This document shows, in pieces, positions 2,506-53,549 of a stretch of DNA of 64,000 nt; positions within the stretch are counted from its first letter, which is position 1, and every line of letters starts with the position of its first letter. Position numbers and translations under genes: made by a program. The notes beneath the pieces are model-generated. The model made no database searches. It was not told where the DNA came from and was given only the letters and a program-made list of their open reading frames with translations. The stretch lies in sequence record NC_023719.1, one strand, 5' to 3'.

Positions 2506-2528
2506 AATAAAAAGAAAGGAACGAGAAA

Positions 2529-2852: not shown

Positions 2853-2855
2853 AAT

Positions 2856-3107
2856 ATGAGAGAAGATCTTAGTGTGCTTGGTAAGTTATTGACAGAAGGG
2901 GTATATACTTATTTCCCTAATTGTGATAGTGTGTCACTTAATGAGAGACGAGATACATATAAGTTAGATTTGATAATGAATATAAGTGAGAGTGATTATT
3001 TGGCTGATGTATTGGTGAAGGGAATGACTTATAAAGAGTTTGAAGAGAAGATTAATTATATGTATGGTATAAATGTAGAAGTTATAGTGATGGGTTTAGC
3101 CGCTTGA
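2856..3107 (+). CDS. Hypothetical, family B
   Basis: GV..YFP...I.E..Y.A..LV.G shared with 3132. Confidence 0.75.
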   Translation: MREDLSVLGKLLTEGVYTYFPNCDSVSLNERRDTYKLDLIMNISESDYLADVLVKGMTYKEFEEKINYMYGINVEVIVMGLAA

Positions 3108-5817: not shown

Positions 5818-6237
5818 ATGATGAAAATAGTTATTGAAGATGAGATATCCCAGTCGTATATAGATCAATTTGAAGATTTCATATTAGGTAAAAAGATTAC
5901 TGATCCAAACTTGCAGAAATACGTACAGTTTGTAAGTATTAATGGAGAAGATATTTTTTCAATAGGGTTAACTGAAAAACAGGAAATGGCAAGAGGAGAA
6001 GATCTGGATATAACAGCTATATATAGTTTGAAAATAATCGGAGAATCTGGTAAACTTAAGCAAGTGACAATAAAATTAAAAAGATTCTCATATGAATATG
6101 AATATGAACGCGTTCAAAAGATATTTGATAAATATGAAATAGGGCAAAGTTTTCATTATGAAGATGTTTTATGTTGTAAGTTAGTAAATCCTAATAATTT
6201 TATGAATTTGATAGTTGAGTTAGATGGAGGACAATGA
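5818..6237 (+). CDS. Hypothetical, family C
   Basis: SYIDQFEDFILG motif. Confidence 0.8.
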   Translation: MMKIVIEDEISQSYIDQFEDFILGKKITDPNLQKYVQFVSINGEDIFSIGLTEKQEMARGEDLDITAIYSLKIIGESGKLKQVTIKLKRFSYEYEYERVQKIFDKYEIGQSFHYEDVLCCKLVNPNNFMNLIVELDGGQ

Positions 6238-6302
6238 GTCCTTCTTTTTTAATATTTTGTTTACGATATTTTTGTTATTTGATATAATAAATATATAAGG
6301 AG

Positions 6303-6749
6303 ATGGACGATATGAAGAATTCTGAGATAGAGAAAATAAAGAAGCTATTAGATGAAAAGTCTTTAAGTATATATGAAGCGTTTGAGAATGAAATTTTGAG
6401 TTTTATGTTAACATGTGATAGTTGTAGTTTATTTTTGAATCCCAATGATAGTAAGAGTCTTGGGAATATAAAGGCGTATGAAGCTGGGTTTGCGTTTATG
6501 AAAAATAAAATTCATTATTTCTTTGAATTGACAATTTGGGCTTCTAGTACATTTAAAGCTACTCGATTATCAGGTAGTATTCGTAATGATAGATATGATT
6601 CTATACTAGATCAAATAGAAGAAAAAACTGGAAGTAGAGAACATAGTGTTGAATATTTTTCAAATTTACGAATAATAAATTTTGATAATATTCATAATGC
6701 TAAAGATTTAAGCATAATATTATCTGTATTATTGGGTGAATGTGTATGA
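6303..6749 (+). CDS. Hypothetical, family C-like
   Basis: Early promoter and RBS. Confidence 0.75.
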   Translation: MDDMKNSEIEKIKKLLDEKSLSIYEAFENEILSFMLTCDSCSLFLNPNDSKSLGNIKAYEAGFAFMKNKIHYFFELTIWASSTFKATRLSGSIRNDRYDSILDQIEEKTGSREHSVEYFSNLRIINFDNIHNAKDLSIILSVLLGECV

Positions 6750-23749: not shown

Positions 23750-24073
23750 ATGTCATCTGTAATTTTTACAATGATGGGTTTCTTATTAGGGGCTCTAATA
23801 GCATTTGTAAAAGGAGGTGAAAAGAAAGGTAGAAGTAAACAGTTTGTTTGCGGACATTGTGAATCAAAGGATACTTTACGTATTCAAAAATTGAGAGATA
23901 GAGATGTTTTCACATGTACGTTTTGCGAAAGAATTATTGATGAAGCAACTGTAAAAATGATGCATAAAGAAGATTATGAAATATTGAAAAAACATCCTGA
24001 GCTATATGAAGAATTTAAACGCGCTAGATTGGAGGGAAGAACTTTTGAAATCCCAAGCAAAGAAAATCATTGA
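23750..24073 (+). CDS. Membrane-anchored zinc-ribbon protein
   Basis: N-terminal TM helix; CGHC...CTFC. Confidence 0.7.
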   Translation: MSSVIFTMMGFLLGALIAFVKGGEKKGRSKQFVCGHCESKDTLRIQKLRDRDVFTCTFCERIIDEATVKMMHKEDYEILKKHPELYEEFKRARLEGRTFEIPSKENH

Positions 24074-25301
24074 TATATTAGAACGAAAAGGTTATGAGGC
24101 GTATTTAATTGGCGGAGCAGTTAGAAATACGCTTCACAATTTCAAGTATGGAGAAGAATTACCAATTAAGGATTTTGACATCGTTACGAATGCATCATGC
24201 GAACAAGTGATGGAATTATTTGAGGATACTGAGGCTAGAGGAGTTCAATTCAATGTAGCTGTGGTAAAGTTAGATGGTTATGAATTTGAAGTAGCTCAGT
24301 ATCGTGGAGAGTCTTATCCTGAAGGTGGATCTCTTCGTCCTGATAAAGTATATCCTGTACAAACTTTAGAGGAAGATTTGAAACGAAGAGATTTCACTAT
24401 TAATGCAATCGCAATGGACAAAATGGATCTTATTAGAGATCCATTAGAAGGTTGTATTGATATAAGAAATAGATTGATTAGAGCGATTGGTGACCCAAAT
24501 GAAAGGTTTTCTGAAGACCCATTGAGAATGATTCGAGCCTTCAGATTTATGTCTCAATTAGATTATTATTTAGATAAGAAAACTAAATTTGGGATTAAAA
24601 ACAACCTTGGTCTATTAAAAAACATACCACATGAAAGAATGAAGGCAGAGATTGACAAGATGTTGCGTGGTCAAGCTGTAGGGGTAGCATTGTTGAATAT
24701 GAAAATGGTAGGTGTTCATAAACATACCTTTTTAAATTCAATAACAAGTCAACAAGTTCCAGTATTAGATGGTGTATTAACTTTATCATATGAGCTGCTC
24801 AACGATGTGATACATAAATTAGAAGAATATGATAGAGACCAACTAGACATTACGGAACTTTATTATTTGTTGTATTACTACACAAGTTATGATGAAGCTG
24901 AAAAGAGTTTAAAAGAATCAATGTTTTTAAATGAAAAAGAAATTGAAAGAGTTTTATTGTTATTGAAGTACAATAAGATTCTGTTATCTAAAGATAATTT
25001 AGATATTTTCAATTTAGTAAAAGAAATTGGTGAGCAACGAGGGTTATCATATTTAAAAGATATTATAGATTCATATCATAAACTTCATCGAATTAATTTA
25101 GATTACTTGCTTGAAAAGTCATTATTTAAGAGTCAGCTTCCTTATAATGGAAATGATATAGTGATGTATGGCGAAAAGTTAAATATTAAGCCGGGTAAAT
25201 GGGTAGGGCAAGTGTTAGATAAAATGCAATTATATGCTATATCTGAAGTGGAGTACGAAATAGAGACTATAATAGAAGAAATGGTTGGTGATGGGAAATG
25301 A
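24045..25301 (+). CDS. cca: Class II tRNA nucleotidyltransferase (CCA-adding family)
   Basis: YLIGGAVRN, KDFDIV, DLKRRDFTINAIA, EDPLRMIRAFRF; start moved to TTG 24045 after GGAGG. Confidence 0.9.
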   Translation: MKSQAKKIIDILERKGYEAYLIGGAVRNTLHNFKYGEELPIKDFDIVTNASCEQVMELFEDTEARGVQFNVAVVKLDGYEFEVAQYRGESYPEGGSLRPDKVYPVQTLEEDLKRRDFTINAIAMDKMDLIRDPLEGCIDIRNRLIRAIGDPNERFSEDPLRMIRAFRFMSQLDYYLDKKTKFGIKNNLGLLKNIPHERMKAEIDKMLRGQAVGVALLNMKMVGVHKHTFLNSITSQQVPVLDGVLTLSYELLNDVIHKLEEYDRDQLDITELYYLLYYYTSYDEAEKSLKESMFLNEKEIERVLLLLKYNKILLSKDNLDIFNLVKEIGEQRGLSYLKDIIDSYHKLHRINLDYLLEKSLFKSQLPYNGNDIVMYGEKLNIKPGKWVGQVLDKMQLYAISEVEYEIETIIEEMVGDGK

Positions 25302-28598: not shown

Positions 28599-29294
28599 AT
28601 GGGTATTCGCAAAATGTCAATCCAAGAAGGTTTAAATGAGTTAAAGGTTTTAGAATCACGTATTACTAAGCTTTTAGCTGAACGTAATACTTATGTAAGT
28701 GTTGTAATTGGTGACCGTTCTGTTCGAGGTTACGAAAACAATGCAGCATTTGAAAAGAAAGCTAAAGCAAAGTTTGATTCTATTGCTGCACTTATTGAAC
28801 GTCGTACAGTAGTTAAAAACGCAATCATTAAGAAAAATGCTGAAGTTCAAGTAGAGATCAATGGTAAAACAATGACTCTTGCAGAAGCTATTAATTATAA
28901 AACGTTTATCGAAGAGAAGAAACGTTTCTTATCTCAGTTAGTATCTCAATATAACACAGCTATGAATCAATTAGAGAACGAAGAGTACAGCTATAAAGAG
29001 AAGTTAGATAAGCACGTTGAAACAATGGTAGGTTCAGATCGCAAAGACAAGATGAAAGAGAACGAAGAAGTAATTAAGTTCTTTAAAGAGTCTAATGAAC
29101 CGAAGTTAATTGATCCAGTTGGTTTAAAAGATGTTATTGATAAATTAACTGAAGAGATTGAAGGGTTTGAAGCAAAAGTTGATTTTGAATTAACTCGTGC
29201 TAATATCACTAATGATATTGAGTTTGAAGACCCGACAGTCGAAGATCCAAAGCCTAAATCAAGCGATAGCGACTTACCTGGTAGTTATCAATAA
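28599..29294 (+). CDS. Helical/coiled-coil protein, distantly DIP1984/DUF6847-like, coupled to a downstream ncRNA
   Basis: GGAGG RBS; NA..V...MTLAEAI..K, IDP, VDFEL..AN...IEF pattern; family call tentative. Confidence 0.6.
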   Translation: MGIRKMSIQEGLNELKVLESRITKLLAERNTYVSVVIGDRSVRGYENNAAFEKKAKAKFDSIAALIERRTVVKNAIIKKNAEVQVEINGKTMTLAEAINYKTFIEEKKRFLSQLVSQYNTAMNQLENEEYSYKEKLDKHVETMVGSDRKDKMKENEEVIKFFKESNEPKLIDPVGLKDVIDKLTEEIEGFEAKVDFELTRANITNDIEFEDPTVEDPKPKSSDSDLPGSYQ

Positions 29295-29337
29295 ACATTA
29301 GCGGCGAAAGCCGCTAATTAATAATAAAAATTAAATA

Positions 29338-29676
29338 TTGCTAATTAGACGCAAACCACGTACTGAACACGTCCATCATATAACGATATATATGAATTTA
29401 AACTATAAGAATATTCTTCTTACAAATAATACTTTGTATGGGAAATCATCTTAATGTAGAGAACATTATTTAGGTGATGCCGTTGACAAAACAGGTGATT
29501 ATAGTTTATAGATTAAGGTTGATATCTTAGATCTTAAGTGTCATAGTTCTTATTTATCAAGTCTTAAGGTTTTATACTGTTCACAATTCTTTCAAACCCA
29601 AGTAGTTTGGTTTCATGAGAGGTTGTTCATTGTCTCGTTGGTTTTACCCTTGGCTGTCTAGTTAGCAATTTTTTTT
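29338..29676 (+). ncRNA. About 340-nt structured RNA of unknown family
   Basis: Terminal helix 29338-29352 / 29653-29668, further long-range helices, ends in T-tract, no ORF. Confidence 0.75.
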
Positions 29677-29814
29677 ATTTTATTTTTAAAAAACAGTTTA
29701 CAAATTACGTATATTGGTATATAATAAATATATAAATAAAAATATATAAAACAAAAATATTTAAACATATTAAATTTATATATTTTATTGATTAATGAAA
29801 AGGTGGGTGTTTTT

Positions 29815-30312
29815 TTGAAAAGATTGTTGAAAACGTCTTCAGGAACTAAAAGAGTATATCATGGTACTTCCTTGGAGAATTTTATGCAGATTGCTTCTTC
29901 TGGTAAGTTAATATCAAATCCAGGAGAAGGCGTTGGTAGTTGGAATGCTGGCCACGTATACCTTGGCACAGAATATGGAGTAGCTTCTATACATGGATAT
30001 GGAGCAGCGCAAAGATATTATGATGAGTTTGACGGTGGTCCACCTTATGTTGTCTTAGAGTTTGAAATTGATGAGTCTAGATTGGTGACAGACCCAGATA
30101 ATAACCCTGAATGTGGAAGTTGGCAAGAGAGTGCTGCTAAAAATGGTCAAGTTGCCGTTGAAGGCGAAATAGATTTACCAGCAAGTACAACTGTTCATTT
30201 TATGGGTGGAGAAGAGTGGAGTCTTGATTTGGCTACCGAGCTTGGTAACTGGGAAAGTTTTTATGAACAACATAAGCAAGATTTATTAGTACCTGGCGAG
30301 GAAGATTATTAA
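29815..30312 (+). CDS. ADP-ribosyltransferase-fold protein with N-terminal KRLLKTS motif
   Basis: VYHGTS...I...G.L, HVYL, VLEFEI; start moved to TTG 29815 after AGGTGG. Confidence 0.65.
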   Translation: MKRLLKTSSGTKRVYHGTSLENFMQIASSGKLISNPGEGVGSWNAGHVYLGTEYGVASIHGYGAAQRYYDEFDGGPPYVVLEFEIDESRLVTDPDNNPECGSWQESAAKNGQVAVEGEIDLPASTTVHFMGGEEWSLDLATELGNWESFYEQHKQDLLVPGEEDY

Positions 30313-30420
30313 TGAAGAGAGTTACTTCTCTTCATTTTTTTATTTTATTTTTAAAAAACGGTTTACACTATACATAAAACGTTATATAATAAGATTATAA
30401 ATAAATAAGGAGTGGTTTTA

Positions 30421-30885
30421 TTGGAGAAAGTATATCACGGAACTTCTTTAGGGAATTTTAAAAATATATATAATACTGGGAAGTTGATACCTAATGAAGG
30501 AAATGGAGTTGGGAGTTGGAACCCAGGACATGTTTATCTTGGAACAAGTTATGGAGTCGCTTTAGCTCATGGTTATGGAGCTAGTCCAACAATGGAAGAC
30601 GTTGGTGGAGAACCTTACGTGGTATTAGAATTTAATATTAATCGCGAGTTATTACTTAAGGATCCAGATAATAATATAGAATGTAATACTTGGGAAGAGA
30701 GTTCAAATAAAAATGGTCAGGTATCAGTGTTTGGAGAATTTCAAATCCCAGAAGATACTATTGTTCATTTTATTGGTGGAGAGTGTTGGGATACTACAGT
30801 GACCACTAATATTAAAAATTGGGAAGAAGCTTATAAACATCATGAAGAAGCTCTACAAGTACCTGGATGGGATGAAGATGAGTGA
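30421..30885 (+). CDS. ADP-ribosyltransferase-fold protein, close paralog of 29815
   Basis: Same motifs; start moved to TTG 30421 after AAGGAG. Confidence 0.65.
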   Translation: MEKVYHGTSLGNFKNIYNTGKLIPNEGNGVGSWNPGHVYLGTSYGVALAHGYGASPTMEDVGGEPYVVLEFNINRELLLKDPDNNIECNTWEESSNKNGQVSVFGEFQIPEDTIVHFIGGECWDTTVTTNIKNWEEAYKHHEEALQVPGWDEDE

Positions 30886-31940: not shown

Positions 31941-32014
31941 GCGCCTGTAGCTCAGCTGGATAGAGCACGAGCCTTCTAAGCCCGCGGTCGTAGGTTCGAA
32001 TCCTACCAGGCGCG
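31941..32014 (+). tRNA. tRNA-Arg(UCU), CCA not encoded
   Basis: Full cloverleaf; loop CTTCTAA; TTCGAAT T-loop. Confidence 0.92.
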
Positions 32015-32181
32015 TACAAAAAAAGAAACTAAAATTTAGTTTCTTTTTTTAATGTTTTGGTAACTCATAAATTAATTTATTAGTCTTAATCATATTAAAA
32101 GAAAAATAACAGTTTTATTTTTAAAAACAGTTTACAAAGTAATAGTTATATGATATAATAAATATATAAATAAGGAAAGGA

Positions 32182-32415
32182 TTGATGTTAATGTTGTATA
32201 CGAATACAAAAGAGGGTAAAGAGGTATTAGAAATATTAGAGCATGTGGTTTCTACAGATGGTATGGAAGTTTACAAATGTTCGTTATGTGATGAGTTATT
32301 TGGTGGTAGACCTAGTGAAGTAAAAGAAGAGAAGCCAATATGCGGTATTTGCGAAATGGAAATAAAAGCAGAAAATTATTTCCCAGGTGAGCATGAGGAT
32401 TACGAGGAAGATTAA
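32182..32415 (+). CDS. Small zinc-ribbon protein
   Basis: CSLC...CGIC. Confidence 0.7.
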   Translation: MMLMLYTNTKEGKEVLEILEHVVSTDGMEVYKCSLCDELFGGRPSEVKEEKPICGICEMEIKAENYFPGEHEDYEED

Positions 32416-32499
32416 TTTCTTCCTTTTTTATTTTTTAAAAAACTATTTACATAATTAAAACAATGTGATATAATAAATATATAAAGGATAAATAAGAAG

Positions 32500-33057
32500 G
32501 TGATTGTAGAAATGATTAATAGTATAAAAGCTTACTATTGGAGGAAAGTTAAAAAACTTAGTTGGTATGAAATTAGTAAAGAGAAAAAATTATCTATGTC
32601 TTTTATGAGTAGATTTATGTATCAATTAGATTGGGATGCTATAAGCGAATATCAAAAACTATCTGAAAAATCTATGAGAGAATTTGAAGATTTAGTTGAT
32701 TGGTTTGAAATTTCTAAACACCAGAATTTGTCTGAAAAATTTATAAGTAAATTTAAATATAAAGTGCTTTGGATGCTTATTTGCGAATATCAAGAATTAT
32801 CCGAAGATTTTATAAAAGAACATCTAGGATTTATTAATTGGCGGCATATTTGTAAATACCAATTGTTGTCTGAAGATTTTATAAGAAAATTCCAACATAG
32901 AGTTGATTGGGATTGTGTTAGTGCAAATCAATATCTTTCTAGAGATTTTATAATTGAATTTATAGATCAAATAGATATTATTCTTTTGAAACACAACGAT
33001 ACTTTAAGTGATGAATTAAAAGAAGAGATGATTTTATTAAAAAAATTAGTAGGTTAA
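32500..33057 (+). CDS. 23-aa tryptophan-repeat protein
   Basis: W..IS..Q.LSE.FIR.F...V repeats plus ELKEEM tail. Confidence 0.85.
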   Translation: MIVEMINSIKAYYWRKVKKLSWYEISKEKKLSMSFMSRFMYQLDWDAISEYQKLSEKSMREFEDLVDWFEISKHQNLSEKFISKFKYKVLWMLICEYQELSEDFIKEHLGFINWRHICKYQLLSEDFIRKFQHRVDWDCVSANQYLSRDFIIEFIDQIDIILLKHNDTLSDELKEEMILLKKLVG

Positions 33058-33192
33058 TTTGTTGTTAATTAAATCATTACTATTTATAATAATAGAATAT
33101 CTTAAAAATTAAACAAAAGGTGCTGCAGGAACTGAGAGAATTGTTCTTTACCATTTCCGTGAGTGTTAAATGAATTATCAGCCTTGTTTAAA

Positions 33193-33348
33193 TACCTGAA
33201 GCGGTAAAAGCAGTTACTTCGACATTATGAGTCCGTTGTCGGTGGTTCGAGTCCACCTCCCGCGACCATTTTAATTTATTAACTATTAACGCGGGATAGC
33301 TCAGTTGGTAGAGCACGTATATTACACTGTTTTAAATAATCTCAGGTA
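33193..33348 (+). ncRNA. yrlA: YrlA-like Y RNA (Y1) with circularly permuted tRNA module
   Basis: Conserved stem TGAAGCGG..AGCAGTTACTTC / CTGTTTT..ATCTCA enclosing T-arm, acceptor hairpin, then D-arm. Confidence 0.85.
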
Positions 33349-33523
33349 GTACATAAAGAGAAGAGAAATCTTCTCTTTTTTTATATTCTGTTAAAAAAGT
33401 TATTTACAAGTACTCAATTTTATGATATAATAAATATATAAGGATTAAATTTTATTAATTTATGTAATTTTCTTTATTTAATCTTATATTAAGTACTGAA
33501 TCAAAATTAAAAGGAGAGATAAG

Positions 33524-34354
33524 ATGAAAAAAAATTCAAGACTTAAGAGAATAAGTGTTTTTAATGATCAGTTAGAAAAAGTTTTGCAACTCGCTAAATT
33601 TAATGGAGTTGAAACTGAACAATATTCTAAATCTGAATCTACACCGATGTCAGAGTTGAAATTTCTTTTATCATTTCAAACAACAACTGACATACCTAAA
33701 CTAGTTATTGGTATGGAACAAGATATTATTGATACCATTAAAGAATCTCAAAATGTGTTTGATAATTTATTCAATGAAGTTAATATTAAAGCGTTAAGCG
33801 ATGAGTATGTAGATAGATATCCTGAAGGTTATTTATATAATTATTTTTCTGAAGAAGAAATTGAAGAATTTAAAAAACAATATGCCGATCAACAAGGTAT
33901 AGATTATCAAGTTTCCGAGCAGGTGGATAATGATGTAGATACTTTATTAATGTATTTTGATGCAATCCAAAGAGCTAATGATGATAAATTAAATGAAATC
34001 GTTAATTCAAAAGGATTTAGTGATGCGGTAATGGTTGTGGAACAAAAAGGTTTTAAAATTGATGAAATAATTAAAGAGTATAACTATAATTTTGATGAAT
34101 TCAGCAGACTTAAATCTAAAAATAAAACCATTGAAACTATTGAAAAAGCATATAATAAAGTTAAAAATGATGACTCTGATACGTACAATGCTCCTGAAAC
34201 AGATGATACGGATGAGTTAATAAGAGGAGCAGCTAAATTAGCATATGAAAAGTTAGGTGTTGATATAGACGGTTACAGATACGCATTTCAAAATGATCTT
34301 TCGGTTTCAAAAATACAAATTATTGATGAAAAAACGTTTAAAATTTCAATGTAA
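33524..34354 (+). CDS. Acidic hypothetical protein with N-terminal SRLKRIS motif
   Basis: AAGGAG RBS, terminator follows. Confidence 0.8.
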   Translation: MKKNSRLKRISVFNDQLEKVLQLAKFNGVETEQYSKSESTPMSELKFLLSFQTTTDIPKLVIGMEQDIIDTIKESQNVFDNLFNEVNIKALSDEYVDRYPEGYLYNYFSEEEIEEFKKQYADQQGIDYQVSEQVDNDVDTLLMYFDAIQRANDDKLNEIVNSKGFSDAVMVVEQKGFKIDEIIKEYNYNFDEFSRLKSKNKTIETIEKAYNKVKNDDSDTYNAPETDDTDELIRGAAKLAYEKLGVDIDGYRYAFQNDLSVSKIQIIDEKTFKISM

Positions 34355-34461
34355 CATAAAAATTAGAGAAGAGAAATCTTCTCTTTTTTTTTTAACTTTA
34401 CGAAATAAACTGTTTACATTATCAAACAATTGTTATATAATAAATATATAAATAATTAATC

Positions 34462-34594
34462 AAAACCGATTGATTGCTGGTTTTAATAAACCTTATACCC
34501 TGAGTAGTCTATCTACTAGAAACTACTTGAAAACTAAAACTCCCCACCGTGCCGTTGGGCTATTCTCCGAGTATGGGGTTAGAGGAGAATAGAA
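34462..34594 (+). ncRNA. Putative structured RNA behind an early promoter
   Basis: No ORF or RBS; GC-rich helices 34489-98 / 34573-82 and 34562-70 / 34586-94. Confidence 0.55.
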
Positions 34595-34664
34595 AATATT
34601 TAAAAAAAAATTAAAAATTTTGTTAAATAAATTCTAACTATTGATAATAATATATCATCTTAAT

Positions 34665-34757
34665 AATCATTTATGAAGCGGAAAGAACAGTTACTTCAAC
34701 TTTAATCCAAACTTGAAACCAAAACTATACTGTTTTTTAAAAAACTCATAAATGATT
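34665..34757 (+). ncRNA. Y-RNA-like module Y2
   Basis: TGAAGCGG-AAAG-AACAGTTACTTC...CTGTTTT..AACTCA in a 12-bp inverted repeat. Confidence 0.8.
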
Positions 34758-34857
34758 CAGTTTTTATCTGAAAGAACTAAAAATCATAAGTTCGCTTTCA
34801 TATAGTTTCTTATTACTTTGTATAAGAGGATAACTATATAAAGTTAAATGTAAATCA

Positions 34858-34967
34858 ATTTAATTATAATTAATGAAGCGGGAAAACAGCTACTTCGATG
34901 AAAATCTATTACACAATTAAAGCTTTTTAATCTGTTTTCACTTATCTCATTGATTTTATTTTAAATT
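34858..34967 (+). ncRNA. Y-RNA-like module Y3
   Basis: TGAAGCGG-GAA-AACAGCTACTTC...CTGTTTTC..ATCTCA. Confidence 0.8.
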
Positions 34968-35091
34968 ACTTATTAATTATTGATGCGGACGTAACAGTTA
35001 CTTCATACAAGATAATGGTATAACATGATTCCTCGCGCTCAACGGGGAAACTACACTGTTACAAATTATCTCAATAATTAATAAGTAATTT
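34963..35091 (+). ncRNA. Y-RNA-like module Y4
   Basis: TGATGCGG-ACGT-AACAGTTACTTC...CTGTTAC..ATCTCA; perfect 21-bp closing inverted repeat. Confidence 0.82.
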
Positions 35092-35097
35092 AAAGAA

Positions 35098-35176
35098 TCC
35101 TTGTTGAAGCGGTAATAACAGTTACTTCATACATTTGGCGTACACAAGCACTGTTATAAATAATCTCAACAATGGA
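35098..35176 (+). ncRNA. Y-RNA-like module Y5
   Basis: TGAAGCGG-TAAT-AACAGTTACTTC...CTGTTAT..ATCTCA. Confidence 0.82.
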
Positions 35177-35191
35177 GTTTAAAAATCAATG

Positions 35192-35361
35192 ATAACTTAA
35201 TACATATATTGATGCGGGATGAACAGTTACTTCTAATATATTGAGAATATTACAAATAATAGATTTAACTTTTTGCTAGATCCTTGGTTGGTTTTTTATC
35301 AATTTACACACGGTTTTTTACTTACTGTTTGTTAAAGATCTCAATATATGTATTAAGTTAT
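35192..35361 (+). ncRNA. Y-RNA-like module Y6
   Basis: TGATGCGG-GATG-AACAGTTACTTC...CTGTTT..ATCTCA; perfect closing repeat of about 21 bp; directly upstream of TROVE gene. Confidence 0.8.
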
Positions 35362-35413
35362 TATTTTTTTTTTGAACATAATAATGTACATAAAAACTAG
35401 GGGGAATAATCTA

Positions 35414-37045
35414 ATGAGTAAAATGTCTAAAAAAGTAAAAGAAACACGTAAAGCAGAAGTACTAAAACCAGTAGAGAACTTTATGGGTGGAATTTCTTAT
35501 GAACATAATCCATTACTAACTCTAAAAATGGTTAGCGCAAGTTCTATTTTTGGTGAACCCCAATACTATCGCTCAGGTGAATTTGCAGAAAAGAACGTAA
35601 GAGATGGTTCTTATCGTATTAATTCTGTATTATCTAAGTACGATATGCTTTTAGGTAAAACGTTTAATGATAAAAACACAAGTGAGATCATGGAAGAAGT
35701 GATTGATGCTGCTTTATCATATGATTTTGAAGGAACTTTACGATGGGCTGTAGAGCTACGTAAAGATTTCTATATGCGTTTAAATCCTCAAGTTATCATG
35801 GTACGCGCTGCGATGCATGAAGATCGTGCTGAATTTAACGAGAAAAACCCAGGTTTATTTGCTCAAATTCAAAAAGATGTTATGAGTCGTGCCGATGAAC
35901 CATCTAGCCAGTTAACTTATTGGTTACACAATAAGGGTTCTAAATCCGGTATTCCTAGTATCTTAAAACGTACTTGGAAGAATCGTTTAGAAAGCATGAC
36001 TCGTTATGAAGCTGCTAAGTACAAAAATGCAAATGTCGGAATGATTGACACTGCTCGTATTTCACATGCGAAAGGTGATTTAGTTGGAGAATTATTAACT
36101 ACTGGTACTATTGAGGTAGATGATTCTCAAAGCACATGGAATGTTTTACGTTCTAATGGCCAATCTTGGAAAGAGATTTTATCAACTATTCAATTACCAC
36201 ACATGGCATTATTACGTAATTTACGTGGTATCTTTGAAGAAGTTAATAACAAAGATCTATGTAAAGAACAAATGGATCAATTAAAAGCTGGCGTAGTAAG
36301 AGGAAAGCAGTTCCCATTCCGTTATTACCAAGCTTATAAAATGGTTTCTATTAGCTCTGTTAATCATAAGCAATTAATCATGGATACCCTTGAGGAATGT
36401 ATTGATATTGCTTTAGAAAACATGCCTAAATTGAAAGGTAAAACGGTAGTTTTAACTGACAATTCCGGTAGTGCACATGGAGCCTTTACTTCAGAATATG
36501 GAACAGTAAATGTAGCGCAAATTAACAATTTGTCTGCCGTATTAACTGCTAAGAATGCTGAAGATGGAGAAGTATACACATTTGGTGACCAACTCAAAGA
36601 AATTCCGATTTCTAAGAGAAATGGAGCTTTAATCCAAGCGAAAGAAGTTGATCGCGTTGGACAAACAGTAGGTATGGGTACCGAACATGGTGTATGGTTG
36701 TACTTGGATAAGATCATTCGCAATAAGATCCATGTGGATAACTTATTTATCTATAGCGATATGCAAGCTGGTCATGGCCGTTTATATGGTACTAACGCAA
36801 GCCAATATAGCAAATATATTGTTAATGGTCATTATATTGACGTATATAAGCTAATTGAGGAATATCGTTCAAAGGTGAATCCGAAAGTAAATGTTTTCAC
36901 TGTTCAAACTGCGGGTTATTCCAATGTGTTGATTCCAGAAGTGATGCATAGAGGTTCTGTTTTATATGGTTGGACTGGTAAAGAGACTGTCTATGCTGAA
37001 CAGATGATTAAGCTTTGGGAACAAGCAGAAATGAAAAAGCAATAA
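35414..37045 (+). CDS. rsr: Ro60/TROVE domain RNA-binding protein with C-terminal vWA domain
   Basis: N.MGG.SY, SS.FGEPQYY, R.DFYMRLNP, LPHMALLRNLRG, QFPFRYY.AY, vWA MIDAS-like LTDNSGS, IYSDMQ, GWT; start moved to ATG 35414. Confidence 0.92.
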   Translation: MSKMSKKVKETRKAEVLKPVENFMGGISYEHNPLLTLKMVSASSIFGEPQYYRSGEFAEKNVRDGSYRINSVLSKYDMLLGKTFNDKNTSEIMEEVIDAALSYDFEGTLRWAVELRKDFYMRLNPQVIMVRAAMHEDRAEFNEKNPGLFAQIQKDVMSRADEPSSQLTYWLHNKGSKSGIPSILKRTWKNRLESMTRYEAAKYKNANVGMIDTARISHAKGDLVGELLTTGTIEVDDSQSTWNVLRSNGQSWKEILSTIQLPHMALLRNLRGIFEEVNNKDLCKEQMDQLKAGVVRGKQFPFRYYQAYKMVSISSVNHKQLIMDTLEECIDIALENMPKLKGKTVVLTDNSGSAHGAFTSEYGTVNVAQINNLSAVLTAKNAEDGEVYTFGDQLKEIPISKRNGALIQAKEVDRVGQTVGMGTEHGVWLYLDKIIRNKIHVDNLFIYSDMQAGHGRLYGTNASQYSKYIVNGHYIDVYKLIEEYRSKVNPKVNVFTVQTAGYSNVLIPEVMHRGSVLYGWTGKETVYAEQMIKLWEQAEMKKQ

Positions 37046-37141
37046 AACCATGAAACCTTACAGATAAATTCTGTAAGGTTTTTATTTACAAATTTTTAGA
37101 TATATGATATAATATAAATATAAAGAAAAGGAGATGATTGT

Positions 37142-37534
37142 ATGAATTTCGTAGTCGGTCAAATTGTAGATACGAGTGAGGTATTAGATTTAATCAATAG
37201 AATTCATTACAATCAACAAGAGATAAATGAAAGTGATGATCTAGAAACTAGACTTTATGTTCATCAAAAATATGAAGTTGTAGAGTTGCTAGTATCGGAA
37301 CTAGAAGATTCTCCTTATTATTTAGATGATGATTTAGTGGATGAATATTTAAAAATGTCTCCCGAAACAATGCAACCTATTGTTTTCAATATATTTGAAG
37401 GTAGAAGGTTATTAGTAGATGGAGGTCATAGAATAGAAGTTGCTAAGTTATTAAAATTGGAAAAGATCAAAGGTTTTGTAGGTTATGATGAACCAGATTG
37501 GTCAGAATATAATGAAAAGTATGAAGATAGTTAA
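37142..37534 (+). CDS. ParB/Srx-like domain protein
   Basis: PIV......LLVDGGHR..VA..L. Confidence 0.75.
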   Translation: MNFVVGQIVDTSEVLDLINRIHYNQQEINESDDLETRLYVHQKYEVVELLVSELEDSPYYLDDDLVDEYLKMSPETMQPIVFNIFEGRRLLVDGGHRIEVAKLLKLEKIKGFVGYDEPDWSEYNEKYEDS

Positions 37535-37611
37535 AAAATCTGTTAATAATATCCACTCTATTAATAATAATATCTTTATCTTAAAAATAAGGCATCTTAG
37601 AAAAGGAGATA

Positions 37612-38118
37612 TTGTTCTTAGTGGATAATCAAATTAAAGCATTAAATGTTATGTTACAATATTTAGATTCTCTTAATAGTCTTAGTAAAAGTTCTTTAAG
37701 TTCTGATGCTTCAAAATTAGTAAATACTACAATTATTGAAGTAATTAATACATTAAATCGTGAAATAGGTATTAAAGATTCTAAAGCTGCTTTAGCTGAA
37801 GCACAACTTAAAGGATCACCTCTTAGTGGTAAAGCTTACACAAAAGATATTCCAAATGGAAAAACTTTTAAATTTAATGGTGGTTTTGAAGATCCAAAAC
37901 AAGAAGATTCTGATGATAAGAGAAATCTTTCTGACATTGCATCAGATATTCAAGATCAAAGTATAGATCTAATAACATCTCTTATTAAAGATGTAGCTAC
38001 TATTAATGGTGACATTAGTAAAATTAATACACAAAAGCTAAAAGAATTAGAAGAGGCTTTTATTAAAAAATTAAAAAAATTAGCAACACCGTTCGATATT
38101 TATGATAAAGAACAATAA
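37612..38118 (+). CDS. Hypothetical protein
   Basis: AAGGAG RBS; start may be 37621. Confidence 0.7.
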   Translation: MFLVDNQIKALNVMLQYLDSLNSLSKSSLSSDASKLVNTTIIEVINTLNREIGIKDSKAALAEAQLKGSPLSGKAYTKDIPNGKTFKFNGGFEDPKQEDSDDKRNLSDIASDIQDQSIDLITSLIKDVATINGDISKINTQKLKELEEAFIKKLKKLATPFDIYDKEQ

Positions 38119-38127
38119 TTAAAATAT

Positions 38128-38215
38128 GGGGTCGTGGGTGAGAGGCTGAAACCACCTCCCTGCTAAGGAGGCAGTCCGCAAGGGCTCGAGGGTTCGAATC
38201 CCTCCGACTCCGCCA
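38128..38215 (+). tRNA. tRNA-Ser(GCU)
   Basis: Cloverleaf with long variable arm; loop CTGCTAA; G73, CCA encoded. Confidence 0.93.
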
Positions 38216-38363
38216 GCTTTATCAATATATATATCAATTTCGCTTATTGGCAACTTTAAGGGAAATAATTGCAAACACATGCCTTGAGAAAGCATGAATC
38301 TTTACCAGAAAAATTCAGTATCTTGCCTCTTAATTGAGGTAAGATAAAACTGGATTTGAAGGA

Positions 38364-38639
38364 ATGGGAGTAATTACAGTGATTACAGTGATTAGTGAAA
38401 TTGAAGAATATTTAAAAGAATTAGAAGTTATCAAGAGTTTTCACGTATCGATTAAGAAAGCTGAAAAATCAAGATGGCATGTAAGAGATAAGTTGGTTAT
38501 TAGAATTTGGGTTAATAAAGATTTATGGGATTCTCAATTAGTGATGACAACTTTAACTGAAGATTATTCTTTTGAAGAAAACATTACAAAAATTTGTAAG
38601 GGAATTTATGTACCAGAATACGATATTTATTACGAATAA
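38364..38639 (+). CDS. Hypothetical protein
   Basis: ORF between tRNAs. Confidence 0.65.
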   Translation: MGVITVITVISEIEEYLKELEVIKSFHVSIKKAEKSRWHVRDKLVIRIWVNKDLWDSQLVMTTLTEDYSFEENITKICKGIYVPEYDIYYE

Positions 38640-38666
38640 AAAATCTAATGGGAATTAGGTGGTAGT

Positions 38667-38861
38667 ATGCTAATTGTAATGAACGTAGTTTTTGTTATAT
38701 GTTGTTTAGCATTTTTATTTGGTAGTATTGGTTATGTAGTTTCTTGTTTTAATGAAAAGTTAGATAAATACCATGGTATTTTAAGTTTAACAGCTTTAGT
38801 TGGTATGTTAAGTACGTTTTTCTTTGGTTTTCTTATTTTTGTAATTTATGGAGTAGTTTAA
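38667..38861 (+). CDS. Small membrane protein
   Basis: Two TM helices; AGGTGG RBS. Confidence 0.7.
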   Translation: MLIVMNVVFVICCLAFLFGSIGYVVSCFNEKLDKYHGILSLTALVGMLSTFFFGFLIFVIYGVV

Positions 38862-38920
38862 AAAAGTTTTAACTAGTTGTTATATTTCCAATGATTTTGT
38901 ATATAATAGATATACCTTAT

Positions 38921-38996
38921 TCACCAGTAGCTCAGCGGTAGTAGCACCTGACTGTTAATCAGGGGGTCGTAGGTTCGAATCCTACCTGGTGAGCCA
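38921..38996 (+). tRNA. tRNA-Asn(GUU)
   Basis: U1-A72 acceptor, loop CTGTTAA, GCCA end. Confidence 0.93.
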
Positions 38997-39002
38997 TATT
39001 AA

Positions 39003-39077
39003 TGCCGGATAGCCAAGTGGTAAGGCAATGGACTTTGACTCCATGATACAGAGGTTCGAATCCTTTTCCGGCAGCCA
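39003..39077 (+). tRNA. tRNA-Gln(UUG)
   Basis: Loop CTTTGAC, GCCA end. Confidence 0.92.
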
Positions 39078-39088
39078 AATAGTAATAC

Positions 39089-39228
39089 TGCCAAGAAGCA
39101 TGTCCTGGTGTAATCGCAGAAACGCGAATCATGCACACTATGAAAATAGTGGTTATCTAAGGCTAATGAGTATAAAAGTCGACGTATACTTTCTTAGATA
39201 CGAAGGTTCGATTCCTTCCTCGGCAACC
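39089..39228 (+). ncRNA. Oversized tRNA-like RNA (about 140 nt)
   Basis: Acceptor TGCCAAG / CTCGGCA and canonical T-arm GAAGG-TTCGATT-CCTTC, but expanded D-loop and giant variable arm. Confidence 0.7.
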
Positions 39229-39233
39229 GTTAT

Positions 39234-39308
39234 GGTGGTTGTAGCTCAATTGGTTAGAGCGCTAGATTGTGGATCTAGAGGTTGTGGGTTCGATCCCCAT
39301 CATCCACC
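39234..39308 (+). tRNA. tRNA-His(GUG), CCA incomplete
   Basis: G-1 and C73; loop TTGTGGA. Confidence 0.9.
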
Positions 39309-39319
39309 CTTATAGATTT

Positions 39320-39394
39320 GGGGTGTTGGCGAAGTGATAACGCATCCGACTTTCTATCGGACATTCGCGGGTTTGAATCCCGTACACCCTTCCA
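39320..39394 (+). tRNA. Atypical tRNA with UUC (Glu) anticodon
   Basis: Cloverleaf; loop CTTTCTA; T-loop TTTGAAT; CCA encoded. Confidence 0.7.
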
Positions 39395-39527
39395 GTAATG
39401 ATTAGCCAAGCAGGCGGTTTAAGTTATCGCAACTTAACAAAATGCCAAGATGAATGTTATCCCGGCAGCTTATGAGAGATTGTTGGGAATAGCTTCTCTT
39501 GATTTTAAATTTAAAGGAGGAATTAAT

Positions 39528-39809
39528 ATTAGTAGTAAGTTCATGACTGAACTAATGTTAAAGAAACCAAGAAATAACGCAAAGAAAGAAAAAGTTGAAG
39601 AAAAGAGTTCAACGATTGTTTTCTTAGAAGAACTTAGGGAAAAAGTTATTCAAAGTGACTTAAAGGAACAATTTGAAGAAGAAATGAAGCATTATCGCGA
39701 GAGTTACGATTTAGTAGAATTGCAGAAGATAGTTGTTAAGTATTCTGATATATTTGGTTTAGAAAGACCAAAGCAGATTGAACAGATGATTTCTAAATAT
39801 TTAGATTAA
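39528..39809 (+). CDS. Hypothetical protein, probable ATT start
   Basis: AAAGGAGG 7 nt before in-frame ATT; alternative ATG at 39543. Confidence 0.65.
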   Translation: MSSKFMTELMLKKPRNNAKKEKVEEKSSTIVFLEELREKVIQSDLKEQFEEEMKHYRESYDLVELQKIVVKYSDIFGLERPKQIEQMISKYLD

Positions 39810-39853
39810 GAATTAAAAATTTAAGGGCAGAAAGGTTTTATTTATAATATTAT

Positions 39854-39930
39854 AGCTGGCGGGAGGTAGGCATCTCGGGGAGTTTCATGAACTCTCATTA
39901 ATTCGGTTCGAATCCGGAGCCCAGCAACCA
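39854..39930 (+). tRNA. Atypical tRNA with CAU anticodon
   Basis: Loop TTCATGA, T-arm TTCGG-TTCGAAT-CCGGA, ACCA end; bulged acceptor and short D-loop. Confidence 0.65.
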
Positions 39931-39931
39931 T

Positions 39932-40003
39932 GGTTCATTGGTCAAGTGGTAAAGACACCTTCCCTTACGGAAGGTAACATAGGTTCGACTCCTATATGGG
40001 CCG
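39932..40003 (+). tRNA. Glu/Asp-like tRNA body with aberrant anticodon loop (identity unresolved)
   Basis: Acceptor, D and T arms canonical; anticodon arm CCTTC-CCTTACG-GAAGG; CCA not encoded. Confidence 0.6.
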
Positions 40004-40059
40004 CCTAATATGTTGCAGAGATTAAGCTAATTGTAGCGCTGCAGCATTATTCTTAACGA

Positions 40060-40368
40060 GGGATTGTTAAGGATTCGACAGGGGAAAATAGTATAAGACA
40101 TGATACTCGTAAAGCATACGTTACATGCTAAGTTAAATATAACTAACAACGAATTACAAGTAGCCTAGTTAATAGGTGCCAAAACAATAGAGTTGCTCTA
40201 ACATCTATTTGAGGTTCAAAGATTTGAGCTATTTCTTACTTTAGAATAAAGTAAGTGGTGGAGCCTAGAGAAAACGCTGTAGAAACTAACTATTCAAATT
40301 GTAAATGGTATCAAACAAGTGTCTATATGAAAGTCTTCTGGACGCGGGTTCGACTCCCGCCAGTTCCA
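40060..40368 (+). ncRNA. ssrA: tmRNA; predicted tag (A)NNELQVA*
   Basis: 5' GGGATTGTTAAGGATTCGACAGGG; G3-U70; TAAATATAACT resume context; 3' GGACGCGGGTTCGACTCCCGCCAGTTCCA. Confidence 0.92.
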
Positions 40369-40559
40369 TATTTAGTTTTAAGAGGTTAGGCAACCATTTA
40401 TGACTCTGTTGAAATTACTTTTAACAGTAGGTTGTATATAAAAATGCCCATCTTGGTGAGATGCCAAGCTCTATTCAAAAGGAGATGAACAATATGTGGG
40501 AAACTCTTTTAGATATTATAGATGAAGTTAGAGATATTACTGGTCTATAGTTAATACAT

Positions 40560-40631
40560 GCGGGTGTGGTATAACGGCTATTATTTCTGCCTTCCAAGCA
40601 GACGATACGGGTTCGATTCCCGTTACTCGCT
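40560..40631 (+). tRNA. tRNA-Gly(UCC), CCA not encoded
   Basis: Loop CTTCCAA, U73. Confidence 0.9.
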
Positions 40632-40766
40632 CTTATTTGGGGATTTTAGATCCTGTACATTTTGTACGAAAAATGCAAGTTCAGATTTACAGAGGCTTAA
40701 GGTCTCGTACACTAGATGTACAAAAATGATCGATTAAAGACTGCGATTTATTCTCAGTCTTTCTAT

Positions 40767-40846
40767 TTAACAAATTATTGAAGCGGTAGTAACAGATACT
40801 TCTTGCTGATGAAAAAACTGTTACAGTTAATCTCAATAGTTTTTAA
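40767..40846 (+). ncRNA. Y-RNA-like module Y7 (minimal, detached copy)
   Basis: TGAAGCGG-TAGT-AACAGATACTTC, 15-nt loop, CTGTTAC..ATCTCA. Confidence 0.78.
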
Positions 40847-41232
40847 CATATAATTTGCAAATAGTAGTATGGTATAGTAAAATGGGTCAAGTGTGTTGAT
40901 TCCCTTATTATTGCTATATTATTTGATTACATTAATAAAGCTGATATTAGTTAGTTACTTAGTGAAGCCACTGGTGAATCTAAGGGTTAGGGGAGATTAA
41001 TTGAATCAGCTTTTAATATGCCAAGTAGAGCTCTTTTAAGGGTGATAGTTCAAAGGACTGTATCGAAAGATTATGAGTGAAAATCTCATTACTTGGCTCC
41101 TCCAATGATATAGTGTGTTAAAGAGGTATCTAATTAGATATCTCTTTTTTATTTGTTTTTAAAAAATTGTTTATGTAGTTAAAGAATGATGATATAATTA
41201 AATTATAAAGAATAATATAAAGAGGTGATAGA

Positions 41233-41640
41233 ATGATTAATACTATTGAGGAGATTAAAGATAAACATGGAGAATCTGTAGATTGGATAGAAATAAGTAA
41301 GAATGAAAAATTGTCTGAAAATTTTATGAGAACATTTAAGAATGAATTAGATTGGAATTATCTTGGTTATAGTCAAAAAATGTCTGAAGATTTTATAAGA
41401 GAATTTCAGGATAAGGTAAACTGGTATTATGTTAGTTCATATCAAAAATTATCTGAAAGTTTTATAGTAGAGTTTAAAGATAAGGTAGAATGGAGTTATA
41501 TTAGTTATTATCAATTGCTATCTAGGGATTTTATAATTGAATTTTCAAATAAATTACAATATAAATATTTAGTGAAAAATTACAATTTATCTAAAGAATT
41601 GCAAGATGAAGTTAAAGTATTATTCGAACTTTTAAAATAA
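41233..41640 (+). CDS. 23-aa tryptophan-repeat protein
   Basis: Four repeats plus ELQDEV tail. Confidence 0.85.
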   Translation: MINTIEEIKDKHGESVDWIEISKNEKLSENFMRTFKNELDWNYLGYSQKMSEDFIREFQDKVNWYYVSSYQKLSESFIVEFKDKVEWSYISYYQLLSRDFIIEFSNKLQYKYLVKNYNLSKELQDEVKVLFELLK

Positions 41641-41683
41641 ATTTGTTAAAGAAACGATGACTATGGTTTATAATATATTATAG

Positions 41684-41953
41684 ATTAATTCATTCATAAG
41701 ACGACAACATGAAATATTGAATCGAGTAGGTGGACTACAAGCGATATATAGATGGATTGAAACCCCAGTCATGATTTCGAAAATACTAGTAAAGTAGAAA
41801 TTAAGTGATCTATATATTGTGCGGATAGTGGCTTAAAGTAATTTAAGTTTGTAGTTAAGGGAGAGCTTGGCCGGCTCGAAGGATCGGGGTACAAAATAAG
41901 ATGGGTAATCGTTAACTTTCGACTCGATGTGTAGATTAAATATTTCAATTAAT
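41684..41953 (+). ncRNA. About 270-nt structured RNA of unknown family
   Basis: Own promoter, no ORF, nested long-range helices, possible pseudoknot. Confidence 0.7.
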
Positions 41954-42000
41954 GTTAAAAAAGCTCGACTAATTTGATATAATAAATTTATTAATGAAAA

Positions 42001-42080
42001 GGACCGTTGCGCCGAGATGGTCGAAGGCACCCAGCTCATAACTGGGAAAATCACCGGGGGTTCGACTCCCTCACGGTCCA
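42001..42080 (+). tRNA. tRNA with CAU anticodon (Ile2 or Met), CCA not encoded
   Basis: Loop CTCATAA; GGACC acceptor resembles Bacillus tRNA-Ile2; slightly long variable region. Confidence 0.8.
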
Positions 42081-53525: not shown

Positions 53526-53549
53526 AAAATAAAAGGAGGGGAAATTTCA

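Follow-up and report, generated by a model that had tools for sequence, protein, structure and literature searches.

A structured RNA behind gp530 of Bacillus phage G and its relatives: a candidate protein-RNA module of tailed phages

The gp530 locus of phage G

The window analysed here is a stretch of 64,000 nucleotides (nt) from Bacillus phage G (NC_023719 / JN638751; window coordinate = record coordinate - 372000). The subject is a two-part locus, consisting of gene gp530 and the 520-nt gap that precedes gp531; the 1.5 kilobases (kb) around it are 100% identical to the phage G record. An initial annotation, made from the letters of the window alone, had described a 231-amino-acid (aa) gene followed by a structured RNA. 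The open reading frame (ORF) was confirmed at 28599-29294, and no ORF of at least 40 aa was found between 29295 and 29787 on either strand. Comparison of sequences across phages establishes a conserved, strand-specific, pseudoknotted RNA in this gap, which is genetically locked to one protein family. The protein and the RNA might together form a ribonucleoprotein (RNP). The parts of the locus are as follows.

28599-29294, plus strand: gp530 ORF, 231 aa
29297-29318, plus strand: spacer hairpin ATTAGCGGC-GAAA-GCCGCTAAT, 9 base pairs (bp), between the stop codon and the RNA, without a U-tract
29337-29676, plus strand: whole structured RNA, about 333 nt plus a U8 tail; ORF-free, conserved and covarying
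29337-29351, plus strand: P1 5' strand ATTGCTAATTAGACG, pairing with TGTCTAGTTAGCAAT at 29655-29669; the closing stem
29353-29359, plus strand: P2 5' strand AAACCAC, pairing with GTTGGTTT at 29637-29644
29368-29394, plus strand: 5' pseudoknot-like element with hairpin CATATA/TATATG (29377-29382/29389-29394) and loop ACGATA
29395-29500, plus strand: variable domain, three predicted hairpins in the minimum-energy fold; poorly aligned among relatives
29505-29575, plus strand: heptad tract, about 10 units, predicted single-stranded
29594-29656, plus strand: 3' core with the AAAYCC motif, Pa, H5, H6, the P2 3' strand and GGCTG
29598-29602/29649-29653, plus strand: Pa, CCAAG/CTTGG
29608-29610/29646-29648, plus strand: H5, TGG/ACC
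29617-29620/29633-29636, plus strand: H6 hairpin with the conserved 12-nt loop GGTTGTTCATTG
29652-29656, plus strand: near-invariant GGCTG
29655-29676, plus strand: P1 3' strand running into the U8 tract (29669-29676)

Fold of the RNA and covariation among close relatives

The 351-nt stretch was compared with shuffled sequences. The z-score was -3.26 on the plus strand, where the energy was below that of all 100 shuffles, and -2.81 on the minus strand. The initial annotation had predicted that the ends of the ORF-free segment pair; both helices are present in the minimum-energy fold and are backed by covariation. The terminal run, which had been read as T9, consists of 8 T, and it probably marks the RNA 3' end or a terminator. 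The closure of the inner domain, AAACTATAA / TTATAGTTT, was recovered in the minimum-energy fold, with only loose conservation of this pairing. The AAACC..TGGTTT hairpin of the initial annotation is not a conserved pairing. Covariation instead backs CCAAG/CTTGG and TGG/ACC, pseudoknotted with AAACCAC / GTTGGTTT. P2 thus crosses Pa and H5, and the core is therefore a pseudoknot. The inner end of P1 is a C-G pair followed by a near-invariant G.U pair. In the 5' element, the loop ACG is able to pair with CGT at 29370-29372.

The protein search identified 19 relatives of gp530 with 47-66% identity, mostly on metagenomic phage-like contigs. Two of them lie elsewhere: a plasmid of Rossellomorea carries one, and the genome of Bacillus solimangrovi the other. 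All 13 fetched loci contain an ORF-free gap of 416-954 nt behind the gene. An RNA homologue was present 3' of the gene in 10/10 distinct close homologues (blastn, MAFFT), including the bacterial copies. When the gaps were aligned, the 5' end and the 3' half were conserved, and the middle was variable. A homologue alignment with a covariation check had been proposed with the initial annotation, and a conserved downstream structure was found behind every close homologue.

RNAalifold predicted 31 pairs in this alignment, 16 of them with compensatory changes. When covariation was scored on the named structure among the close relatives, 97.4% of cells were paired, and 20/39 pairs had changed on both sides. 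None of 500 shuffles was as good, and slid controls reached 33-45% paired. The double changes are distributed over the helices: P1 in the G clade has 15 pairs, 6 with double changes; P2 has 98.8% of cells paired and double changes in 4/8 pairs; the 5' hairpin has double changes in 6/6 pairs. The GAAA-capped spacer hairpin, which the initial annotation had correctly placed and described as having no T-tract, is present in phage G and in relatives L003, L004, L010 and L014, and absent in L007, L009, L012, L013 and L015. It is an optional feature of the phage-G subclade.

Scans of viral, genome and metagenome collections with fixed DNA patterns, which were too rigid, returned only close relatives and one 3' remnant. 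The remnant is an isolated 3' RNA fragment (positions 1491-1545 of locus L018), extending from H6 to the P1 3' strand, on a contig of a Bacillota metagenome-assembled genome (JAEWIG010000201). It lies beside an alcohol dehydrogenase gene, and no gp530 homologue was found on the 5-kb contig. This fragment is probably a decayed remnant.

The RNA in divergent clades and in unselected loci

Thirteen divergent clades were inspected in addition to the phage G clade. They are represented by T5, Lactococcus 949, phiPsa381 (Pseudomonas), B. velezensis pAD3, Salmonella pSal-SNUABM-01, Escherichia 4MG, Vibrio Bennett, Vibrio JSF12, Erwinia RAY, Salmonella SA002, phiCDIF1296T, a Deinococcus plasmid and a Priestia plasmid. 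In 14/14 clades, the gene is followed by a same-strand RNA of the same architecture, and the gap behind the gene is 300-510 nt in the 13 divergent clades. In the shared plan, a 13-22-bp stem closes the RNA; CG stands at the end of its 5' strand, ahead of an A-rich junction. The plan continues with a variable 5' domain and a periodic tract immediately upstream of the helix AAAUCC-NNG ... CNN-GG, and GGCUG stands ahead of the 3' strand of the closing stem. The AAAYCC...GGCUG motif was found in every clade inspected, and the closing-stem sequences are unrelated from clade to clade. The strand order of the 5' element was also seen by eye in T5, 4MG, RAY, SA002, JSF12 and Bennett. The RNA length across the family is 290-440 nt.

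An anchored cross-clade alignment of 21 sequences from 12 clades was 96.3% paired, with 73 double-change cells in 13 pairs. The inner 8 bp of P1 were 95% paired, and the G.U pair was kept in 20/21 sequences. Pa was 98% paired, with 3/5 pairs covarying. The G.U pair, together with the canonical terminators found directly after the RNA in 949, phiPsa381, Bennett and pAD3, shows that the functional strand is the coding strand and that the element acts as RNA and not as DNA.

An unselected sample of 80 IMG/VR loci with 30-42% identity to gp530 was fetched via a diverse protein alignment. For a locus to count under the strict signature, the motifs and five Pa pairs had to be present, together with a closing stem of 11 or more positions without a gap. 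This signature was found downstream on the coding strand in 39/80 loci; among the controls, 1/80 reverse complements was positive, as against none in the upstream sequence of either strand and none in the shuffles. With a relaxed signature, in which one bulge and one mismatch were permitted and at least 13 pairs were needed, 70/80 loci were positive, and the four controls gave 5, 5, 4 and 4. Those strict negatives that were read by eye mostly have variant linkers (GGCAG, GCUA, UUG) or bulged stems. A detector based on duplex energy only fired on 57/80 shuffles and was discarded. The strict-signature scan of both strands of the window returned the true site and two weak matches, at 5902-6496 (plus) and 53101-53533 (minus). 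These have closing stems of 11-12 and were taken as chance.

The initial annotation had proposed a dedicated pair of a protein and a non-coding RNA on one transcript. This pairing recurs in 10/10 close homologues, 14/14 clades and 39-70 of the 80 unselected loci, versus 0-5 in the controls.

The heptad tract

The TTAAG-like repeats of the initial annotation proved to be a 7-nt periodic array with an invariant T and A across relatives. The units in phage G are TTTATAG, ATTAAGG, TTGATAT, CTTAGAT, CTTAAGT, GTCATAG, TTCTTAT, TTATCAA and GTCTTAA. In the G clade, the invariant T and A return exactly every 7 nt over 29506-29543, and every 7-9 nt beyond. RNAalifold gave no consensus pairing inside the tract, and the pairings seen by eye were inconsistent between relatives. 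Across the family, the tract measures 70-90 nt, with 8-12 unpaired units.

The autocorrelation at lag 7 has a z-score of 3.5 in phage G. It was significant in 19/21 sequences, with a mean z of 3.4 (lag 14: 2.5). The GC-rich Deinococcus copy is also periodic, with units CUCAAGN. In the unselected loci, the best 100-nt window had a median z of 4.0 downstream versus 1.6 in the upstream control (p = 4e-22), and the unit consensus was U-N-A-A-R-G-U. The initial annotation had offered two uses for the tract, as a multimeric protein-binding region or as a template. Multimeric binding requires an unpaired periodic tract, and the predicted unpaired state and the periodicity fit this idea. Nothing was found in favour of a template, as no polymerase or reverse transcriptase is linked to the module.

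The gp530 protein family

The gp530 protein belongs to phrog_1491 (E 3e-67). The PHROGs label of this family is 'tail fiber protein', and RefSeq took the label over for gp530. This label is probably wrong: the fold predicted by modelling is a helical bundle, and the gene lies outside the structural genes. In phage G it is placed among transfer RNA (tRNA), transfer-messenger RNA (tmRNA), CCA-adding enzyme and Ro60 genes, and elsewhere in tRNA arrays. Neither a fibre-like fold in the AlphaFold2 model nor placement in a virion structural module in the genomic context was found.

The AlphaFold2 model of gp530 (pLDDT 80) is a bundle of long helices packed on a small beta sheet, which consists of an N-terminal strand, a beta hairpin and a C-terminal strand. 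A charge dipole is conserved in 11/11 diverse homologues, with an isoelectric point (pI) of 7.9-10.5 for the N-terminal half and 4.4-5.2 for the C-terminal half. Pfam and NCBIfam gave no match for 10 family members, PADLOC gave no significant match, and the PDB sequence search with gp530 returned nothing significant. When a profile of the 19 homologues was searched against the PDB, the best match was 3kdq from C. diphtheriae, a weak one (E 0.011). The same structure was the top Foldseek match in the PDB (probability 0.98, E 0.02), but with TM-scores of 0.34/0.47 and a root-mean-square deviation of about 12 A. The initial annotation had called the protein tentatively DIP1984-like. These profile and fold matches lend that assignment some weak support, and the TM-scores are only 0.34-0.47. 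One phage record cites CDD 'septicolysin_like' for its phrog_1491 homologue, and every viral structural neighbour of gp530 in BFVD is labelled 'uncharacterized'. The sub-threshold matches to TrfA (E 0.0014), SoFic, AbiQ and Csl4 were taken as noise.

The family is widely distributed. By tblastn it was found in 723 of about 50,700 deposited phage records, with hosts including Salmonella and Escherichia (T5-like), Pseudomonas, Vibrio, Klebsiella, Erwinia, Lactococcus and Bacillus, and also in 18 plasmids. A profile search of 1.84 billion representatives found at least 2,610 clusters at 50% identity. Nearly all of them are single-domain proteins of about 205-215 aa.

Transcription and genomic context

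Across the family, the RNA starts 3-70 nt past the stop codon on the coding strand, and either a terminator, a U-tract or a tRNA gene comes after it. In T5, a promoter between the ORF and the RNA was looked for and none was found; a sigma-70 promoter lies immediately after the RNA. The own transcription unit proposed in the initial annotation has to be qualified, as the module of many relatives is embedded in co-oriented tRNA arrays. In 31/60 sampled loci, tRNA genes lie within 1.2 kb, all of them co-oriented, and tRNA-Met is often just ahead of the ORF or just behind the RNA.

Some members contain tRNA-like arms in the variable domain. In RAY and SA002, the T arm comes before the D arm, in the permuted order of YrlA; relative L012 has D and T arms in the usual D..T order. 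The embedded arms are located as follows.

RAY (L029), about 2055-2115
SA002 (L033), about 2045-2110
L012, about 1480-1545

In the T5 st0 record (AY692264), a 265-aa antisense ORF, T5p083, is annotated over the 212-aa phrog_1491 homologue, which is itself unannotated. At this locus (L021), T5p083 occupies 2297-3094 on the minus strand, versus 2315-2953 on the plus strand for the homologue. In record coordinates, the homologue lies at 35300-35938 and its RNA at about 34935-35291, both on the minus strand. In the SA002 record, a coding sequence (CDS) is annotated on top of the RNA (L033, 2221-2565). T5p083 and the SA002 CDS are probably spurious, caused by the unrecognised module.

Other observations were made at individual loci. 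In pSal-SNUABM-01 (L025; 783-1511, 2472-3621), the flanks contain genes for a ProQ/FinO-family protein, a phosphoribosyl pyrophosphate synthetase and a nicotinate phosphoribosyltransferase, and the ProQ/FinO-family gene overlaps the start of the phrog_1491 gene. In L004 and L005, which are phage-G-like metagenomic contigs, the phrog_1491 gene has an SmpB gene some 700 nt upstream. A Y-RNA-type 5' motif, TGAAGCGGAGAGAACAGTT, starts about 25 nt past the RNA end in the same two contigs (about 4045-4065 in L004 and about 4041-4061 in L005).

In phage G, the module is surrounded by an island of RNA biology, which contains a CCA-adding enzyme gene, tRNA genes, a tmRNA gene and a Ro60/TROVE gene. The main features of the island, with the promoter-like sites, are listed below.

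24006-25301: CCA-adding enzyme
31941-42080: nine tRNA genes and the tmRNA gene, the latter at 40060-40371
About 35414-37045: Ro60/TROVE gene gp540, 5.7 kb downstream of the module
29697-29725, 30362-30390, about 33404-33445 and about 34414-34455: promoter-like consensus sites

The genes directly downstream, gp531 (29788-30312) and gp532 (30412-30885), are tandem paralogues of the uncharacterised family phrog_13493. Each has a strong promoter, and a terminator follows gp531. The promoter-like consensus of phage G, TTTACA-N17-TATAATAAATATATAA, is highly conserved, and it is found upstream of gp531, gp532, gp539 and the Y-RNA array. Upstream of the Ro60/TROVE gene there are six Y-RNA-like modules (33180-33350 and 34668-35365). 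Each has a perfect basal stem, an AACAGU/ACUGUU helix and a conserved internal loop (5' GA[AU]GCGG.. / 3' ..AAAU[AU]AUCUCA). A tRNA-like domain was seen in the first module only, with a sub-threshold match to Rfam YrlA (36 bits, E 1.3e-5, 33233-33319). The 'LYQLSY' antisense ORF (33188-33316) is a shadow of this first module.

Proposed mechanism and alternative explanations

On the basis of sequence and structure prediction, gp530 and its RNA are interpreted as a two-part, self-contained module, which is carried by many tailed phages and by a few plasmids and chromosomes. The probability that the RNP reading holds as a whole is put at about one half. The gene and the RNA are regarded as self-contained because the Rossellomorea and B. 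solimangrovi copies have unrelated neighbours.

In the proposed mechanism, the RNA would be transcribed together with gp530 on one transcript. P1 closes the fold, the long-range pseudoknot of P2 with Pa/H5 clamps the AAAUCC...GGCUG junction, and the scaffold displays the heptad tract, which is predicted to be unpaired. The protein may bind the RNA via its conserved basic N-terminal half. Most likely, an oligomer would bind, in which each heptad is contacted by one protomer or one dimer, by analogy with TRAP and HutP. Assembly would probably take place in cis, as the protein emerges from the ribosome beside the RNA. More speculatively, the particle may take part in a phage-host conflict fought at the level of RNA; it could, for instance, be a decoy or tether for a host factor directed at tRNAs or at RNA. 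Such a role is suggested by the location of the module in tRNA arrays, the RNA-repair neighbourhood in phage G and the tRNA-like arms of some members. A wider proposal is advanced tentatively: there might be a widespread class of phage RNP, in which a double-pseudoknot scaffold carries a heptad strand read by an oligomer of a helical protein. This class would reside in the tRNA arrays of T5-like, Felix/Vequinta-like, jumbo and Gram-positive phages and act in host conflicts centred on tRNAs or RNases.

Several points weigh against the RNP interpretation. On the protein side, most members have an overall pI on the mildly acidic side (5-6.6), and no recognisable RNA-binding domain was found in phrog_1491 proteins by the Pfam, NCBIfam and PADLOC scans. 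The sole structural relative, 3kdq, has an uncharacterised function. On the RNA side, the pairing of the 5' element loop with its upstream sequence (ACG/CGU) is supported by one compensatory change only. The heptads are degenerate, with only U at position 1 and A at position 3 fixed, and a role in contacts between RNAs or with a host factor would suit them equally well. The cross-clade alignment leans towards the proposed structure, because its 5' anchor was chosen by complementarity, and false positives of the relaxed detector run at about 6%.

The RNA might instead be functional alone. It could form an RNA-only assembly, or it could act as a decoy or sponge that occupies a host protein, such as an RNase, a defence nuclease directed at tRNAs or a chaperone of RNA. 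In that case, the protein would be linked by function, as a chaperone, a regulator or a worker on the same target, and would not be a stoichiometric partner. The acidic charge and the missing RNA-binding domain would agree with this, and so would the placement in phages and tRNA arrays and the tRNA-like parts, which are shared with ROOL, GOLLD and drum; none of these three RNAs is known to have a dedicated protein. However, the adjacency of gene and RNA is near-universal despite protein identities of 30-40% and unalignable RNA, and the stop codon stays within 3-70 nt of P1. Adjacency over such deep divergence points to a link more intimate than a shared function. With the conserved basic N-terminal half also counting against it, a role of the RNA alone is considered unlikely.

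It is quite improbable that the RNA is a long cis-acting 3' untranslated region (UTR), which would tune the stability, termination or translation of the gp530 mRNA and have no function in trans. The RNA is always on the transcript of the gene, begins right past the stop codon and has a terminator-like end, as such a region would. Its 290-440 nt, two pseudoknots, conserved loops, periodic tract and tRNA-like inserts nevertheless exceed known bacterial 3' UTR stabilisers in elaboration, and it is embedded among stable-RNA genes.

A type III-like toxin-antitoxin or addiction pair, in which the repeat RNA would neutralise the adjacent protein, was also considered. The module resembles such pairs in combining a protein and a repeat RNA in an autonomous unit, which occurs on phages, plasmids and chromosomes with unrelated neighbours. 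PADLOC models of ToxN/AbiQ gave no match for gp530 or the T5, phiPsa381 and Deinococcus proteins, and a single marginal AbiQ match for the Lactococcus 949 homologue (E 0.009). The predicted fold is helical and not that of ToxN/AbiQ, and no significant PADLOC or Pfam match was found. The repeats are 7 nt in a large scaffold versus units of 34-36 nt, and the RNA lies downstream of the gene, not upstream. This explanation has a slim chance at most.

The RNA could in principle be a Y RNA partner of the phage G Ro60 gp540, as its ends pair in a long stem, Ro60 and a Y-like array are nearby, and the Y-like 5' motif directly follows the RNA in L004 and L005. No match to YrlA (RF02553) or Y_RNA (RF00019) was found in 29200-29850 up to E 10. 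The phage Y-module motif GA[AT]GCGG..ACAG[CT]TACTTC is absent from 29337-29676; it occurs five times in 34675-35233, with a one-base variant at 33199 seen by eye. The RNA is also three times the size of Y RNAs. It follows phrog_1491 genes in many other phage clades (the Ro60 comparison covers phage G), and Ro60 has been reported in a small subset of jumbo phages only (PMC7824862). The Y RNA idea was rejected because the YrlA model and the Y-module motif do not match and the RNA is spread over many phage clades. It is just as hard to credit that the element acts at the DNA level, for instance as a partition site, an origin or a set of iterons, with the protein as its DNA-binding partner. Plasmid partition and repressor proteins are known to use arrays of heptad iterons, and a sub-threshold TrfA match was seen (E 0.0014). 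However, the covarying helices include conserved G.U pairs, which would be C.A on the opposite strand. The element also invariably has the orientation of the gene, terminators come after it, and its signature is absent from the reverse strand (1/80 strict).

A structured RNA of 300-400 nt beside each gene was unannotated in every record inspected, including that of the model phage T5, and at least two records are overlaid by probably spurious ORFs. The practical yield would be a new Rfam RNA family, a corrected protein annotation and the removal of false ORFs. Should the protein and the RNA prove to assemble into a particle, phages would encode a further dedicated RNP besides tmRNA-SmpB and Ro60-Y RNA, and heptad repeats on a pseudoknotted scaffold would represent a new principle of recognition. 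The placement in tRNA arrays ties the module to the tRNA-targeting defences and counter-defences under current study.

Comparison with known families and systems

Rfam 15 at the gathering score gave nothing at the RNA site in the window, which agrees with the initial annotation that the RNA lies outside the named families. A permissive Rfam search of the phage G region gave two chance-level matches only (E 5-6), and searches of four distant loci (T5, 949, phiPsa381, pAD3) gave nothing downstream of the gene. An identity with tmRNA (RF00023) was rejected, as there is no Rfam match at the site, stop codons fill the tract and the RNA lacks a CCA end. Neither an account of the RNA nor a function for the protein was found in the literature searched, and an unpublished or unindexed account is possible. 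With an RNA family unlisted in Rfam 15 and a gene-RNA pairing undescribed in that literature, this looks like a new phage module.

The closest comparison for the protein is with the DIP1984 or 'septicolysin-like' proteins (PDB 3kdq, CDD cd12208), as 3kdq gave the best though weak profile and fold match. However, 3kdq has 154 residues, and the Pfam and NCBIfam models match no phage protein tested. Type III toxin-antitoxin systems (ToxIN, AbiQ/antiQ) similarly combine a protein with a repeat RNA and travel alone on phages, plasmids and chromosomes. The module differs from them in its helical protein, its units of 7 nt rather than about 35 nt, and its downstream and highly structured RNA.

The large ornate RNAs ROOL, GOLLD and drum also occur in phages and prophages near tRNA genes, sometimes with embedded tRNA-like sequences. 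They form RNA-only assemblies and have no dedicated adjacent protein gene (10.1101/2024.12.08.627333). In contrast, the module RNA is without an Rfam 15 match and is invariably 3' of one protein family.

The Y RNAs and YrlA, with Ro60/Rsr, are modular non-coding RNAs whose 5' and 3' ends form a long stem and which have a dedicated linked protein gene. The module shares these features, and also the occurrence in phages beside tRNA and RNA-repair genes and, in RAY and SA002, the T-before-D order of the tRNA-like module. It differs in its protein partner, a helical protein of about 210 aa and not a TROVE ring, and in an RNA three times larger, with two pseudoknots and a heptad tract. Phage G, moreover, has separate Y-like RNAs near Ro60.

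TRAP and HutP are oligomeric rings which read spaced NAG triplets on single-stranded RNA, and HutP sites consist of UAG plus 4 nt with a period of 7. They act on leader RNAs as attenuators. The module tract, unlike their targets, is enclosed in a large pseudoknotted scaffold that forms the 3' end of the mRNA for the protein itself, and gp530 has no sequence or fold similarity to either protein. The likeness is seen on the RNA side alone, where the module, like the targets of TRAP and HutP, presents about 10 short, A/G-rich units, evenly spaced in a tract that is predicted to be single-stranded.

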